This document shows, piece after piece, positions 7,930 to 61,587 of a stretch of DNA of 64,000 nt (position 1 is its first letter; each line of letters starts with the position of its first letter). The stretch lies in sequence record NC_019526.1; one strand, given 5' to 3'. The translations under genes and the position numbers were made by a program. Below the pieces are notes generated by a model, which saw only the letters and a list, made by a program, of their open reading frames with translations, did no database searches and had not been told where the DNA came from.

Positions 7930-8136
7930 ATGAATGAAAAATTGGCTTTAATTTGGAAAAGTGGTTATGACTTTAAAGTAACACCAAAGGAACTTAGAGT
8001 ATTTCGTACTGAATACTGTGAGTATCTTGATTTAGACCAGTATAATACCATTGTTCGTATTGAACACGATGGCGATGTTGAAGGTCATATCAGTGAAGTA
8101 CTTGATAAAGCTATTTCAATTATTGAGGCAAAATGA
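7930..8136 (+). CDS. hypothetical protein
   Basis: AAGG SD. Confidence 0.7.
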   Translation: MNEKLALIWKSGYDFKVTPKELRVFRTEYCEYLDLDQYNTIVRIEHDGDVEGHISEVLDKAISIIEAK

Positions 8137-8333
8137 TGATTAGTTTTTATTTGGCAGTGATACTTATTAATGGTAATATCGAAAGAACACTAGGAAATGG
8201 GTTTTATAAAACCCCCGAAGAATGCTATACGACGACAAATTGGCCTCGTGATAGTGAAACTCGTGAAGAATTCAAATGCATCAAGGCTACTGGTGATTTT
8301 GTAAATTTCAAAGTTATTGAGGTACAAAAATGA
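8133..8333 (+). CDS. small secreted/membrane protein
   Basis: Hydrophobic N-terminus, two Cys. Confidence 0.7.
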   Translation: MMISFYLAVILINGNIERTLGNGFYKTPEECYTTTNWPRDSETREEFKCIKATGDFVNFKVIEVQK

Positions 8334-8611
8334 TTCTTTCAAAAGAAGAACGTGATATTGTATTACACGCTTTATATTTTCTTGAGAATGAAAGTATGCA
8401 TACGGATGCTTCTATGGCGTTGATTGAACGTCTTCAGAAAGAAGAAATGCCAAAGATTTATCGTATCCGTTATCTTGATGGGGCTGGTGGTGATCGTATT
8501 GCCATTGCTGAATCAAGAGAAGAAGCAGAACAAATCTTCACTGATAATTATTTGAATCCTTTTTTGATGGAAGAAGTTTGTGAAGTGAAAAATGGCACTT
8601 TTATTGGTTGA
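8330..8611 (+). CDS. hypothetical protein
   Basis: MILSKEE N-terminus shared with 9245..9490. Confidence 0.75.
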   Translation: MILSKEERDIVLHALYFLENESMHTDASMALIERLQKEEMPKIYRIRYLDGAGGDRIAIAESREEAEQIFTDNYLNPFLMEEVCEVKNGTFIG

Positions 8612-8641
8612 CAGATAATAAAAATACAGTATAATGTTTAT

Positions 8642-8742
8642 ATCAAGACAAGTAGTAGCTTAATATGTTCAAGAGCAGCGAGCAAACACAGCATAATGGT
8701 ACTCGTCTGTACAGGTTGCATTCCTGTTTACTTGTCTTTGAT
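8642..8742 (+). ncRNA. tRNA-like RNA with extended acceptor stem and 19-nt anticodon loop
   Basis: D arm GCTT/GAGC, anticodon stem GCGAG/CTCGT, T arm ACAGG-TTGCATT-CCTGT; no CCA; directly after TTGACA-16-TATAAT (8608-8635). Confidence 0.6.
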
Positions 8743-8768
8743 TTCTTTTAATTCAACGAGGTTATAAT

Positions 8769-8972
8769 ATGTTTACACCAAACACATCAAATGTAGGTAA
8801 GCGTGTAGTACTGTTAGAAGATGTATCAACACTTCGTGGCACTTTCAGTAAAGGCCATGAAATGACTATCATCGGTGAAACATCTCGCGGTTGGGATCTC
8901 GAAGATGATGATGGTAATCGCATTTTAGAAGCTGGGATGTTTGGTCATAAAGAATTTAAACTTCTTGACTAA
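8769..8972 (+). CDS. hypothetical protein
   Basis: GAGG SD. Confidence 0.75.
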   Translation: MFTPNTSNVGKRVVLLEDVSTLRGTFSKGHEMTIIGETSRGWDLEDDDGNRILEAGMFGHKEFKLLD

Positions 8973-8999
8973 ATGATTACGTGCTGCTAATATAAGAAC

Positions 9000-9067
9000 A
9001 AGACGGGGTGATAAATTAACATTAACCTTAATCGATCAACAGGTGGCTGCGGTTATCATCCCGTCTT
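9000..9067 (+). ncRNA. leader hairpin / small RNA
   Basis: 15-bp stem 9000-9014/9053-9067 directly after a TTGACT-17-TAATAT promoter. Confidence 0.4.
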
Positions 9068-9091
9068 TCCTTTTTAACAATGAGGTTTATC

Positions 9092-9232
9092 ATGAGTAAA
9101 GATGTTCACGTTCCAGTACAAAATGGTATGTCAGCATGTGGTAAACGAGTGGATTTAACTGGTTGGGTACGTTCAATGATCACTTGTAAAAAATGCAAAA
9201 AAACCAAAGAGTATTTTGATTTGGAAAAATAA
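9092..9232 (+). CDS. small putative Zn-binding protein (46 aa)
   Basis: GAGG SD; H...C...CKKC. Confidence 0.6.
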   Translation: MSKDVHVPVQNGMSACGKRVDLTGWVRSMITCKKCKKTKEYFDLEK

Positions 9233-9244
9233 CAAGGATTTATT

Positions 9245-9490
9245 ATGATACTATCTAAAGAAGAACAACAAATTGTTGCACAAGCAATGAGTCTTTTGCA
9301 CTTAACCACTGACAAAGAAAAAGATTTATTCAATCGTCTTAAAACTGGGGTTGATACAGTTCAACGTATAAAAGAGAGTAATGAACGTAAAATGAAATTC
9401 CATGCATCACTCATAGCTATGTATGGTCCAAATGCACATTTACATTATAATGATTATTATCAATACTGTGAAAAAAATGGTTTTTGGTGA
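9245..9490 (+). CDS. hypothetical protein
   Basis: MILSKEE N-terminus shared with 8330..8611. Confidence 0.75.
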   Translation: MILSKEEQQIVAQAMSLLHLTTDKEKDLFNRLKTGVDTVQRIKESNERKMKFHASLIAMYGPNAHLHYNDYYQYCEKNGFW

Positions 9491-9534
9491 AATAAAAGAT
9501 TGACAAATAACATTAGTACTGTATAATGTTTACA

Positions 9535-9621
9535 ATCAAGACAAGATTAGTTCAGTAGGTAGGAACCGTTCTATGTGTATCTAAGAATAAGTTGTGGTTC
9601 GATTCCCTATCTTGTCTTGAT
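9535..9621 (+). ncRNA. tRNA-like RNA with 12-bp acceptor stem and 11-nt anticodon loop
   Basis: ATCAAGACAAGA/TCTTGTCTTGAT stem, D arm GTTC-AGTAGGTAG-GAAC, T loop GG-TTCGATT-CC; directly after TTGACA-16-TATAAT (9500-9527). Confidence 0.65.
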
Positions 9622-9625
9622 TTCA

Positions 9626-9815
9626 GTGGTGAGCTTTAGTGATACATCTATTGACGATGCGGGTGTGAGGGTGGCTACCTCAGCAGTGGCGAATTATGTA
9701 GCAACTGTGCTGAAAGATGCTAAGACAGTTCGATTCTGTCCACCCGCCGCACTAAAGGTAGGGTACTAAGTACCAGAAACTAACACGAGGCAGTCGGAAT
9801 ATACGCCTACACCAC
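9626..9815 (+). ncRNA. about 190-nt RNA with an embedded tRNA-like domain (9659-9747)
   Basis: Acceptor GCGGGTG/CACCCGC, perfect T arm GACAG-TTCGATT-CTGTC, enclosed by CTTTAGTG/CACTAAAG and GTGGTG/CACCAC stems. Confidence 0.6.
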
Positions 9816-9846: not shown

Positions 9847-10194
9847 ATGTCAGAATCACTTGTAAATAAAAACTCTCAAGGATTTGTAATTGCAAATAAA
9901 AACCCTCAAGGGTTTGTAATTATTGATCTGAATCTTAGCAGCGGGAGAATGTTCCAAAGTACTGATGCATGTATGCAATTTGACTTCCTCGGTTATGAAA
10001 TTAGTGTTAGTACAGGTGGTTCAGTACTACAAGGTGGTTTTCTTCAGGAAATTTTAGTTACTGATCCAGAAGAACGTCCTCACTTCATTCAGGGGTCGGT
10101 GCAAGATGCTATTATGTTTGTTATTCAGCGTGAACAAAATAGAAACTTTAATGAATTTACTAATGCAATGAGTAATAAGATTGAAGAAGTTTAA
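9847..10194 (+). CDS. hypothetical protein
   Basis: GAGG SD; 10-aa tandem duplication at N-terminus. Confidence 0.75.
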   Translation: MSESLVNKNSQGFVIANKNPQGFVIIDLNLSSGRMFQSTDACMQFDFLGYEISVSTGGSVLQGGFLQEILVTDPEERPHFIQGSVQDAIMFVIQREQNRNFNEFTNAMSNKIEEV

Positions 10195-38648: not shown

Positions 38649-39074
38649 ATACTATATTGGACGATATGGTCATTATAGTAGACAATTTAATGGATATGGG
38701 TGATTCAGTACTGATAATAATGAATAGGAATTGATAAGAATAGTATAGTACTATTCAGTACTATTCAGAGTGAATCAGTACTATTAAGAATGATTAAGTA
38801 CTGATATGCCACTAAGTCCGTTTATAAAGTCGCACCCAGTGGGCTACATTTGTAACTATTCAGTACTTAATAATTCAACTCATCAATTATTACAAACCTA
38901 ACTATTTCAAATCTAATTACCCCATTAACTAAATCCCCAAATTATATATTAGCAAAAATCCCAGTACTAAATCAAGAAAAATCTGGATTGTCGATGAGAA
39001 AAAATCTGGATTTTAAAAATTTTGAAATGTCGTTCATAGTTCAGGAAAAAAATGAAATCATAACAAGAAAAGTG

Positions 39075-42791: not shown

Positions 42792-42877
42792 GTACTTGAC
42801 AATTCGATCCAGTACTGTATAATGTATTACATCAAAGGGGATACATAGTGTATCCCTGATATAAAGGAGTAGCGACT

Positions 42878-47507: not shown

Positions 47508-47625
47508 AGGGTGCCGAGATGTATCTATAGTTTAATGATTTTAAGTACTGAAAAATAATTATAAAAAGTACTTGCTAGACGTGAATTCTTTTAAGAATTC
47601 ACTTGTATTTGTGATTCAGTACTGC
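47508..47625 (+). repeat. 118-bp direct repeat, copy 1
   Basis: Identical to 57395-57513 except a 1-nt indel. Confidence 0.9.
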
Positions 47626-53254: not shown

Positions 53255-53505
53255 GTACTTGACTATGTGATTCAGTACTGCTATTATATATTCATACCAA
53301 TTAAGGAGATAGACCAAATGAAACAAGCTAAATTTAATTCAGAAATTAAAGCAGCAAAAGCACACAAAGTACAGTTAGTAGTACTGGTTATTGTATCAAT
53401 CTTTTTGCTGTGCAACATCGGCTAAAATAATTATTACAGTACTATTGACAACCAACGATAGTACTGGTATAATTACTTTACCAAATAAAAAAGGAGTAAC
53501 CAAAA

Positions 53506-57394: not shown

Positions 57395-57513
57395 AGGGTG
57401 CCGAGATGTATCTATAGTTTAATGATTTTGAAGTACTGAAAAATAATTATAAAAAGTACTTGCTAGACGTGAATTCTTTTAAGAATTCACTTGTATTTGT
57501 GATTCAGTACTGC
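57395..57513 (+). repeat. 118-bp direct repeat, copy 2
   Basis: Matches 47508-47625. Confidence 0.9.
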
Positions 57514-61307: not shown

Positions 61308-61587
61308 ATACTATTCAGTACTGAATATTCAAGACTTATGTTATGATATGTATAATAATGCGAGTGTTTACAGAAAAGCAATGCGTTCAGTACTGAATAC
61401 CTTAGTCGAAGAATTCAATTCAAAATATAAAGGAACGCAGGTACTGATAAAAATTGATAATGGTGTTTATAAAACTGTAATTAAATATTATACTATATCA
61501 TATATCAATTGTGCATTCAAAACTGATATTGGATGGAGAAGATATTTTGATGAAACTACTATGATAGTCGGGAATAAAAATGACTAA
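61294..61587 (+). CDS. MTK-x-EY-x-SV family paralog 1
   Basis: Clear paralog of the next two ORFs. Confidence 0.8.
   Translation: MTKIEYYSVLNIQDLCYDMYNNASVYRKAMRSVLNTLVEEFNSKYKGTQVLIKIDNGVYKTVIKYYTISYINCAFKTDIGWRRYFDETTMIVGNKND

Follow-up and report, generated by a model that had tools for sequence, protein, structure and literature searches.

Two tRNA-like elements of Klebsiella phage vB_KleM-RaK2 are best explained, with a probability that we put at about 0.6, as paralogous, decaying tRNA-derived relics that take the place of the stem-loop in early promoter-leader cassettes repeated along the phage genome. The window, i.e. the whole stretch of 64,000 nt of NC_019526.1 that was analysed, is 100% identical to RaK2, a jumbo phage classified in Alcyoneusvirus and not T4-like. 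RefSeq tags both elements as pseudo tRNA-OTHER. They are the same two loci as the two pseudo-tRNA genes, in a cluster of ~1 kb, published for RaK2 (Simoliunas et al. 2013, PMC3622015), and are thus already known; that paper is silent on promoters and closing helix, on the enlargement of the loops, and on the paralogous units and their variation among relatives. Features are listed in Table 1.

Table 1. Features in and around the two promoter-element units and examples of similar cassettes (positions in the window)
Feature	Position	Strand	Description
ORF253	8330..8611	+	93 aa; starts MILSKEE; first part of repeat unit 1
Promoter P1	8608..8635	+	early sigma-70, TTGACA-16-TATAAT; 12/12 match; 97% identical in relatives
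Element 1	8642..8742	+	pseudo-tRNA (F403_gt006 = 8649-8735); 14-pair closing helix, 19-nt central loop
ORF254	8769..8972	+	67 aa; downstream of element 1, on the mRNA it would lead
Third closed-stem element	8994..9078	+	ahead of ORF255; begins AACAAGACGG; z = -3.9 vs shuffles
ORF256	9245..9490	+	81 aa; starts MILSKEE; first part of repeat unit 2
Promoter P2	9500..9527	+	early sigma-70, TTGACA-16-TATAAT; spacer end AGTACTG; 12/12 match
Element 2	9535..9621	+	pseudo-tRNA (F403_gt007 = 9541-9616); perfect 13-bp closing helix, 11-nt central loop
Element 3	9626..9815	+	conserved ~190-nt structured RNA with tRNA-like core; 4 nt downstream of element 2
Element 3, outer helices	P0 9626-9631/9810-9815; P1 9634-9641/9750-9757	+	
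Element 3, tRNA-like core	acceptor 9659-9665/9741-9747; T arm 9724-9740	+	
Element 3, 3' part	hairpin 9762-9774; 9781-9791	+	invariant TAACACGAGGC at 9781-9791
ORF257	9847..10194	+	115 aa; first ORF downstream of elements 2 and 3
Generic cassette	42796..42860	+	early promoter, then hairpin; start ATCAAAGGGG, end CCCTGAT
Further like cassettes	41484, 48242, 48578, 51672, 51984		promoter + hairpin

A sequence-only reading had described both elements as cloverleaves with D and T arms, each behind a TTGACA-16-TATAAT promoter, with an acceptor stem extended to about 12 bp, an enlarged anticodon loop and no CCA. The promoters were confirmed, each with a full sigma-70 match and a 16-nt spacer; the −10 box ends 7 nt (element 1) and 8 nt (element 2) before the element. 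The acceptor extension is real and somewhat longer than stated: element 1 is closed by 14 pairs with one bulged U, and the ends of element 2 form a perfect inverted repeat of 13 bp inside the element, or 14 bp if 9534/9622 are included. Perfect inverted repeats of at least 12 bp with a spacing of 30-110 nt occur six times in the window, compared with ~1 expected per simulated window. The closing helix has a predicted pair probability of 0.85 in element 1 and 0.92 in element 2, and leader and trailer of both elements are fully paired in the predicted fold. The cloverleaves hold up only in part: they can be drawn by hand for both elements, but are worse than the minimum free energy (MFE) fold by 3.8 kcal/mol (element 1) and 7.1 kcal/mol (element 2). 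Pair probability of the D and T arms of element 2 is near 0; only the closing helix is robust in both elements.

Likeness to tRNA is limited. ARAGORN called zero tRNAs over the window, hence neither element, and an Rfam search of the whole window at gathering thresholds gave no matches. In a search of 1.8 kb, element 2 matched the Rfam tRNA model RF00005 with 30.4 bits (cut-off 29, E 7e-4), while element 1 had no match at E<=10; the copies of the elements in relatives did not match the tRNA model either. The working RaK2 tRNAs, whose cluster lies 12-16 kb from elements 1 and 2, score 52-70 bits with the same model (Thr, 34). The canonical elbow (D-loop GG, T-loop UUCRANY, 5-bp T stem) is found in neither element: element 1 has the T loop UUGCAUU and a D loop without GG; element 2 has a good T loop and GG, yet its T stem is of 4 bp with a mismatch. 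A canonical tRNA has a 7-nt anticodon loop that carries U33 and an anticodon that can be read; the loops here are enlarged, as claimed, to 19 nt in element 1 and 11 nt in element 2, and to 17 and ~13 nt in relatives. A search for targets of both loops across the window found 9-10-mers only, at chance level, and therefore no sign of an antisense seed. CCA is indeed absent from both elements; this absence is uninformative, however, because all five annotated working tRNAs of RaK2 lack an encoded CCA as well. Remnants of D and T arms, disabling defects and relaxed constraint in relatives together characterize the elements as tRNA pseudogenes. Alignment of the elements with RaK2 tRNAs and with the tRNA(CUA) found in synteny in relatives gave near-equal scores and singled out no parent tRNA.

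The promoters belong to a larger set. In the window we found 11 TTGACA..TATAATG promoters (0.1 expected), and the extended consensus of P2 is common to nine other promoters. A closed helix follows directly in 8 of the 11; among the nine other promoters with the TATAATG consensus, six run directly into hairpins of 9-10 bp, five of which start with ATCAAAG. The leaders of these generic cassettes fold with an MFE of −12 to −17 kcal/mol, where the background averages −6.8. The third closed-stem element, which is 98-100% identical in relatives, has 15 pairs (one of them G-U) around an interior of ~29 nt, followed by a U-rich tract.

The shared ends of the elements can be traced to the same cassettes. 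In the window ATCAAGACAAG occurs exactly three times, always at ends of elements 1 and 2. In Salmonella phage 7t3 the same promoter and ATCAAGACAAG are present with neither a 3' complement nor a tRNA-like body; in a 366-kb IMG/VR phage the promoter and ATCAAGAC lead straight to an RBS and ATG, again with no tRNA-like body. Phages 121Q and Hallingskeid have a plain hairpin behind the promoter, which in 121Q starts with ATCAAGG. As judged from these comparisons, ATCAAGAC(AAG) would be the initial transcribed sequence conserved behind the early promoter in the cassettes of Rak2-like jumbo phages. The elements themselves are also copies of each other. ORF253 and ORF256 share 40% identity over 47 aa (E 2e-5), and the two units, each made of ORF, promoter and element, are by their sequence tandem paralogs; extra copies of the ORF-promoter-element-ORF unit are present in relatives. 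Pfam and PHROG searches assigned the neighbouring ORFs to families of unknown function only (PHROG: ORF253, ORF254 and ORF257). The argument that shared termini reveal a maintained design mostly falls, with a 5' end generic to the early promoter and units that are tandem paralogs. Since the shared end would be the standard start of an early transcript folded back, the elements look like decaying tRNA relics, serving as structured mRNA leaders at most, and not like purpose-built decoys.

Wider searches kept the elements within a narrow group. Scans with the promoter and ATCAAGAC across IMG/VR and metagenomes found the elements in only three copies, on two contigs similar to RaK2 and KP13-7, and a few unrelated cassettes; a −35 box was present in 6 of the 51 matches. 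An IMG/VR scan for elements with the clamp and the T loop returned RaK2 itself and one chance match in coding DNA. The D-arm pattern common to element 1 and its counterpart in phage K64-1 matched ordinary tRNA genes in IMG/VR, so the D arm is generic; a tighter pattern of ATCAAGAC and D arm gave chance coding matches only. No homologs outside Alcyoneusvirus were found in IMG/VR or metagenomes.

Comparison of relatives, which are 96-99% identical to RaK2, showed the bodies of the elements to be unstable, with faster divergence than in their flanks. Identity is 95-99.6% for the flanking ORFs and 99.5-100% for element 3. Searches turned up element 1 in RaK2, OU509535 and a single metagenome contig only; element 2, present in KP13-7, has no copy in the otherwise near-identical K64-1, RCIP0023 and phiKp_21. 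In the slot-1 copy of relatives the entire D arm is gone, and one T-stem position is A, G or C in three near-identical genomes. The copy of element 2 in phage Muenster (92% identical) has an uncompensated A>C change in the helix, a T-loop G>T change by which purine 57 is lost, and D-arm indels. The closing helix is mostly kept: 8 of 9 variants have 11-14 outer pairs, one compensatory change is seen (U-A to A-U at acceptor position 7), and the sole copy with just 5 outer pairs is also without a consensus promoter. Since the placement of deletions by MAFFT was ambiguous for element 2 and its D-arm-less paralog, helices were compared sequence by sequence.

Breakpoints between close relatives coincide with the cassettes. 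RaK2 homology to five relatives stops exactly after ATCAAGACAAG, and the deletion of element 2 in K64-1 and RCIP0023 lies between the −10 box/initial transcribed sequence and element 3. This pattern resembles promoter-early stem-loop (PeSL) cassettes of T4-like phages (Arbiol 2010, PMC2839356; Comeau 2014, PMC4122927). Like PeSLs, the RaK2 cassettes are short repeats composed of a consensus early sigma-70 promoter and a stem-loop, present in many copies between small ORFs without assigned function, in early regions that vary, with indel or replacement breakpoints at the cassettes. Unlike PeSLs, which are described as composite terminator/promoter motifs, they have the stem-loop 3' of the promoter, at the predicted transcript start; the helix is mostly without a U tract, and in two RaK2 copies the loop is a tRNA-derived body. 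The RaK2 cassette is an analogue of the PeSL motif and not a member of that family; its recombination is suggested by the breakpoints alone.

From the identity, paralogy, cassette context and variation pattern described above we infer a transcript start as well as stabilising and recombination roles. Host RNA polymerase would start at the A of ATCAAG or within 1-2 bases of it, and the 3' complement would pair back onto this start. With the 5' start so folded, the early mRNA would open with a long helix and have no free 5' tail. The mRNAs led in this way would be those of small ORFs: ORF254 behind element 1, and element 3 with ORF257 behind element 2. The closing helix would be the part that selection keeps, most likely as a shield of the transcript from 5'-end-dependent decay, by analogy with a known leader. 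Emory, Bouvet and Belasco reportedly identified, in 1992, a 5'-terminal stem-loop in the E. coli ompA leader as an mRNA stabiliser. As in that leader, the helix of the RaK2 elements would begin at the 5' end, or a base or two from it, and leave no single-stranded tail for RNase E or RppH; it differs in enclosing 60-75 nt and not a small loop. The repeat of promoter and ATCAAGAC may double as a recombination point for module shuffling, as in PeSL cassettes. The tRNA body, probably a relic of the nearby tRNA cluster, would be neither decoded nor charged, and is apparently being lost. The proposal that the elements are stabilising tRNA-like leaders for the downstream ORFs agrees with a closing helix kept at the predicted transcript start.

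That the elements are plain junk, i.e. neutral tRNA pseudogenes whose clamp and ends were inherited from a recent duplication, behind a promoter serving the ORF alone, is unlikely, though it has a real chance of being right. Tandem paralogy of the units, high variability and loss in relatives, and the published status as pseudo-tRNAs all agree with it. It does not account for the number of closing pairs kept in the variants together with the compensatory pair, or for the promoter-then-hairpin layout at six other promoters; the hairpin sequences there are unrelated, which argues that a 5' helix is wanted.

Quite unlikely, in our estimate, are maintained tRNA mimics: discrete non-chargeable RNAs that would soak up or mislead an anticodon nuclease, PARIS/AriB, RelA or RNase P. 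The strong dedicated promoters would suit such RNAs, and fast turnover is compatible with an arms race. Element 1 and its K64-1-type counterpart differ at ~45% of the sequence, with most stem positions changed, and still all four stems can be drawn in both; the only mismatches, in one acceptor pair and one T-stem pair, fall in the counterpart, whose MFE fold is the cloverleaf. Retention of all four stems in this diverged pair could reflect selection on the whole fold and not on the clamp alone. Every family member has an enlarged central loop, which simple decay does not predict, and element 2 and its D-arm-less paralog have the same 15-nt loop stretch, GTTCTATGTGTATCT. Yet the decoy idea of the sequence-only reading gained no support: among near-identical relatives no part of the locus is less conserved than the tRNA body, and tRNA searches mostly missed the elements. 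The signature of the elbow (D loop/T loop), which tRNA-binding proteins read, is degenerate in both, and the loops are unlike the anticodon loop that would be the target. A fully sealed acceptor end makes a poor copy of a mature tRNA. Moreover, the commonest copy in relatives has lost its D arm, element 2 is gone from three near-identical phages, the Muenster changes are uncompensated, the promoter cassette accounts for the shared end, and homologs beyond Alcyoneusvirus were absent from IMG/VR and metagenomes. In a literature search on tRNA-like anti-defence RNAs of phages, none of the titles listed concerned such a decoy. Bacterial Y RNAs (YrlA), tRNA mimics bound by Ro60 (Chen et al. 2014, PMC4201824) and found in bacteria and phages, are likewise non-decoding and have modules resembling D and T arms. 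Their topology is opposite: the two ends of YrlA come out where a tRNA has its anticodon, with a closed stem-loop as 'acceptor', whereas the ends of the RaK2 elements close the acceptor. Rfam models of Y RNA had no match in the region of the elements, and YrlA was rejected as the identity of elements 1 and 2.

As a long shot, elements 1-3 may represent a habit of Rak2-like phages of making 'closed' tRNA-shaped RNAs, with leader and trailer sealed together, for a job independent of tRNA function. Such RNAs might occupy RNase P or other host tRNA-binding factors early in infection, or act as nuclease-proof caps; if so, the swapping of elements 1 and 2 among relatives would be an arms race and not decay.

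Attenuators or terminators, in which a long helix with U-rich sequence would stop or throttle early transcription soon after initiation, are very improbable. A run of 5-8 T follows the slot-1 copy of relatives, TTTCTTTT lies downstream of element 1, and the PeSLs of T4-like phages are described as composite promoter-terminator motifs (PMC4122927). However, the helix of element 2 is followed by TTT only and the generic hairpins by no U tract at all; the helices, rich in A/U and enclosing 45-75 nt, do not resemble intrinsic terminators, and a terminator scan flagged solely the inner T arm of element 1.

The relic-and-leader interpretation, which we prefer, corrects an over-reading, as nothing out of the ordinary is needed to explain the missing CCA, the sealed acceptor or the shared ends in RaK2. 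The stakes for elements 1 and 2 themselves are small. Rak2-like jumbo phages would, on this interpretation, use repeated cassettes of promoter and 5' helix as leaders and recombination joints, and a record of the cassettes is useful for annotating and engineering Klebsiella phages that are therapeutic candidates.

Element 3 may matter more, being a well-supported and widespread RNA of phage tRNA clusters that is absent from Rfam (a search against Rfam gave no match). Compensatory changes support 18 of its 31 predicted pairs, and many phages unrelated to one another have homologs of it within their tRNA clusters. An intact tRNA(CUA) ends 2-9 nt upstream of the element-3 homolog (ARAGORN ends) in Yersinia phage fHe-Yen9-04, Pectobacterium phage CBB and IMG/VR locus L060. 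Element 2, whose loop contains UCUAA, might, if it were a working tRNA, derive from the amber-suppressor tRNA(CUA) that fills the same slot in related jumbo phages; its alignment score to CUA tRNAs is, however, no better than to other tRNAs (50.5 versus 49.5). The notion that elements 1 and 2 are still working tRNAs, with expanded anticodon loops or short introns, trimmed, given CCA by the phage enzyme and used in translation, is close to refuted: RaK2 does encode a CCA-adding enzyme and RNA repair enzymes (PMC3622015), and its working tRNAs likewise have no encoded CCA, but no decoding mode is known for loops of 11 and 19 nt, neither splice signals nor a phage splicing endonuclease are evident, covariance model scores are at or below threshold, the T stem is mismatched, a discriminator buried in a 13-bp helix makes a poor substrate for RNase P and 3' processing, and close relatives have lost the elements.

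The closest analogue of element 3, and not of elements 1 and 2, is the stable species 1 RNA (rnaC) of the T4 tRNA cluster. Both RNAs lie inside a phage tRNA cluster and have a tRNA-like T arm near the 3' end; rnaC, of ~140 nt, has no detectable common sequence with element 3 and no TAACACGAGGC module. Y RNA and T4 rnaC/rnaD were considered as the identity of element 3 and are analogues at best. Homologs of element 3 are at present unannotated, or mis-annotated as small ORFs or 'tRNA-Undet'.

Between window positions 8000 and 10500 the sequence matches Klebsiella jumbo phage vB_KleM-RaK2 at 100% identity (NC_019526; subtracting 186000 from a record position gives the window position). Elements 1 and 2, the two tRNA-like structures behind early promoters, are known objects, since RefSeq annotates both as pseudo 'tRNA-OTHER' (F403_gt006 and F403_gt007) and they are in print as RaK2 pseudo-tRNAs (PMC3622015); the same work reports that RaK2 encodes a CCA-adding enzyme. 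Their shared ends have an ordinary origin; the sequence-only reading added anatomy and interpretation.

The anatomy is real. Both TTGACA-16-TATAAT promoters are present as claimed, and the long sealed acceptor end is a closing helix of 14 pairs with one bulged U in element 1 and a perfect terminal helix of 13 bp in element 2 (14 bp if 9534/9622 are included). The central loops are enlarged (19 and 11 nt, respectively), and neither element encodes CCA. The last feature is uninformative, because none of the five annotated working RaK2 tRNAs encodes CCA. Within the window, ATCAAGACAAG is found three times, always at ends of elements 1 and 2.

Coordinates of features (window positions unless a fetched locus, L, or the RaK2 record is named) and segment identities in four sequenced relatives
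Feature	Position	Strand	Description	Identity in relatives
ORF253	8330-8611			
Promoter of element 1	8608-8635		12/12 sigma-70 match, 16-nt spacer	
Element 1	8642-8742		F403_gt006 at 8649-8735	present only in RaK2, OU509535 and one metagenome contig
Third closed helix	8994-9078	+	15 pairs including one G-U, ~29-nt interior, z = -3.9	98-100%
ORF256	9245-9490			
Promoter of element 2	9500-9527		12/12 sigma-70 match, 16-nt spacer	
Element 2	9535-9621		F403_gt007 at 9541-9616	92% in Muenster; missing in K64-1, RCIP0023, phiKp_21
Element 3	9626-9815	+	190-nt RNA, four bases past element 2	99.5-100%
Flanking ORFs				95-99.6%
Promoters				97%
Early promoter with immediate hairpin	41484, 42796, 48242, 48578, 51672, 51984	+	each ahead of a small ORF	
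AGTACT motif (examples)	38788-38876, 47544-47623, 53423-53480, 57432-57511, 61312-61399			
Truncated ORF254-like start	L002 1218-1265 (K64-1)		same place in L003-L005	
ORFs across element 3	9575-9769; L002 2369-2512 (K64-1 ACQ27_gp323); L003 2786-2884 (Muenster_505); L004 2744-2938 (KP13-7 DIDNDMLP_00164)			
Additional RaK2 tRNA genes	L010 6488-6572, 6942-7014, 8886-8960 (record 176487-176571, 176941-177013, 178885-178959)		outside the window	

The likeness to tRNA is marginal. A cloverleaf can be drawn by hand for both elements, at a cost of 3.8 (element 1) and 7.1 kcal/mol (element 2) relative to the minimum free energy (MFE) fold. In the predicted folds the closing helices are robust (pair probabilities 0.85 and 0.92), while the D and T arms of element 2 have probabilities near zero. 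ARAGORN called no tRNA in the whole 64 kb, and Rfam gave no match at gathering thresholds. When 1.8 kb was searched with the Rfam tRNA model, element 2, at 30.4 bits, barely exceeded the cut-off of 29; element 1 was absent even at E<=10. Working RaK2 tRNAs, whose genes lie 12-16 kb upstream, score 52-70 bits (Thr, 34). Three more RaK2 tRNA genes, outside the window, lack RefSeq annotation (52-58 bits with Rfam; anticodons UAA, CCA and CAU, read by eye) and would bring the working tRNAs of RaK2 from five to eight.

The shared termini had suggested a maintained design; they have a more ordinary source. The window holds 11 TTGACA-N-TATAATG promoters (0.1 expected), most with a spacer ending in AGTACTG. 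Nine remain apart from the elements' own two, and in six of these a perfect hairpin of 9-10 bp begins only a few bases downstream. Five of the six hairpins start with ATCAAAGGG and end with CCC(T)GAT; two hairpin sequences are reused (GGGGATACA..TGTATCCC three times, GGGAATGAAT..ATTCATTCCC twice). In phage 121Q the same promoter precedes ATCAAGGGGAGAA..TTCTCCCC, a similar hairpin follows it in Erwinia phage Hallingskeid, and in a 366-kb IMG/VR jumbo phage promoter and ATCAAGAC lead directly into a ribosome-binding site and ATG. In Salmonella phage 7t3 the promoter is followed by exactly ATCAAGACAAG, with neither a tRNA-like body nor a 3' complement. Judging from these sequences, the 5' terminus of elements 1 and 2 therefore appears to be the conserved initial transcribed sequence of a Rak2-like early promoter cassette. 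The general design would be a helix beginning at the first transcript bases, and in two cassettes its 'loop' is a tRNA-derived body.

Promoter spacers and many inverted repeats throughout the window contain the AGTACT motif, frequently in the form CAGTACTG; it could serve a phage regulator as a binding site or be a signal related to methylation or restriction.

ORF253 and ORF256 (40% identity, E 2e-5; both starting MILSKEE) are each followed by promoter and element; the two ORF-promoter-element units are paralogous. Extra copies of the unit occur in the same region of K64-1, Muenster, KP13-7 and RCIP0023. Behind the ORF253 promoter (slot 1) the relatives carry an element-2-like copy from which the D arm is completely missing. 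A run of T and a shortened ORF254-like start (ATGTTTACTCCACAT..., ~15 codons by eye) follow it, the latter left over from a duplicated ORF-promoter-element-ORF unit; a further MILS-type ORF comes next. Just upstream of ORF254 lies a strongly diverged counterpart of element 1 preceded by a degenerate promoter. The third closed helix, between ORF254 and ORF255, starts with AACAAGACGG and is followed by TTTCCTTTTT; it could be the ORF254 terminator or a further leader of the same family.

Variation is concentrated in the tRNA-like bodies. In Muenster, element 2 carries indels in the D arm, G>T at the purine of the T loop and an uncompensated A>C in the helix; across three near-identical phages the slot-1 copy has A, G or C at one position of the T stem; homology to element 1 ends precisely after ATCAAGACAAG. 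The outer helix retains 11-14 pairs in eight of nine variants, and at acceptor position 7 U-A is replaced by A-U, a true compensatory swap. The ninth, with just 5 outer pairs, probably lies inside a transcript, because it is also the copy that lacks a consensus promoter. This pattern is consistent with selection on the 5'-terminal helix with relaxed constraint on the tRNA body, and also with cassette-mediated module shuffling, as described for the promoter-early stem-loops of T4-like phages (PMC2839356, PMC4122927).

We propose, with a probability of about 0.6 for the whole, that host sigma-70 polymerase would start at the A of ATCAAG and the first 13-14 transcript bases would base-pair with the sequence flanking the relic on its 3' side; the early mRNA of ORF254, or of element 3 plus ORF257, would then open with a sealed helix. 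By analogy with established E. coli biology, this helix most likely shields the mRNA from 5'-end-dependent decay. The repeated promoter/ATCAAGAC would double as a joint for recombination, and the tRNA body would be a decaying remnant.

The structured-leader half of the earlier inference survives and the decoy half does not. That the elements are tRNA mimics acting as decoys has some points in its favour: all four stems are retained both in element 1 and in its K64-1 counterpart although most stem positions differ between them, with just two mismatched pairs, both on the K64-1 side, and the predicted MFE fold of the counterpart is the cloverleaf (37% ensemble frequency). The central loop is enlarged in every family member (19, 17, 11 and ~13 nt), and element 2 and its paralog share 15 identical loop-region bases. 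With two or three independent sequences per element type, and no homologs beyond Alcyoneusvirus in pattern scans of IMG/VR and metagenomes, descent from two distinct tRNAs cannot be told apart from selection acting on the fold; decoys, though improbable, therefore keep a small probability. A working tRNA, pure junk and an attenuator were the other explanations considered.

Element 3, the structured RNA beside element 2, is probably the more interesting object and merits a separate entry. It comprises an outer helix P0, a helix P1 (CTTTAGTG / CACTAAAG), a small hairpin and a tRNA-like core (7-bp acceptor, D arm, a variable hairpin replacing the anticodon arm, canonical T arm); the 3' module consists of a hairpin, an invariant AG.AA.TAACACGAGGC, a second hairpin and CGCCTAC. 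An alignment of 15 sequences reveals compensatory changes at 18 of the 31 predicted pairs, among them pairs of P0, P1, the T arm and the 3' hairpin. Homologs occur in Yersinia fHe-Yen9-04, Pectobacterium CBB, Serratia, Erwinia (phiEa104/M7 group), Klebsiella and Citrobacter phages and in many IMG/VR phages. In these enterobacterial phages, many of them unrelated, they reside in tRNA clusters, in unannotated gaps or mis-called as 'tRNA-Undet', 'tRNA-Phe' or small ORFs. The homolog of each of three related jumbo phages has an intact tRNA(CUA) 2-9 nt upstream, measured from the ARAGORN ends, in the position held by element 2 in RaK2. Rfam 15 gave no match at E<=10. T4 species 1 RNA (rnaC), which has a T arm, is a positional analogue and not a sequence relative, and YrlA has the opposite topology; PMC10690425 has >10,000 unnamed candidates, of which element 3 may be one. 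Across element 3, small ORFs are annotated as 'hypothetical protein' or can be called; these are probably mis-annotations, since the RNA covaries and resides in tRNA clusters. In Klebsiella phage phi1_175008, the large gene CDS0138, annotated 'RNA-binding protein' (L009 1-187, 1431 nt) and perhaps encoding a Ro60/TROVE-type or other partner, lies ~1.2 kb from the element 3 homolog.
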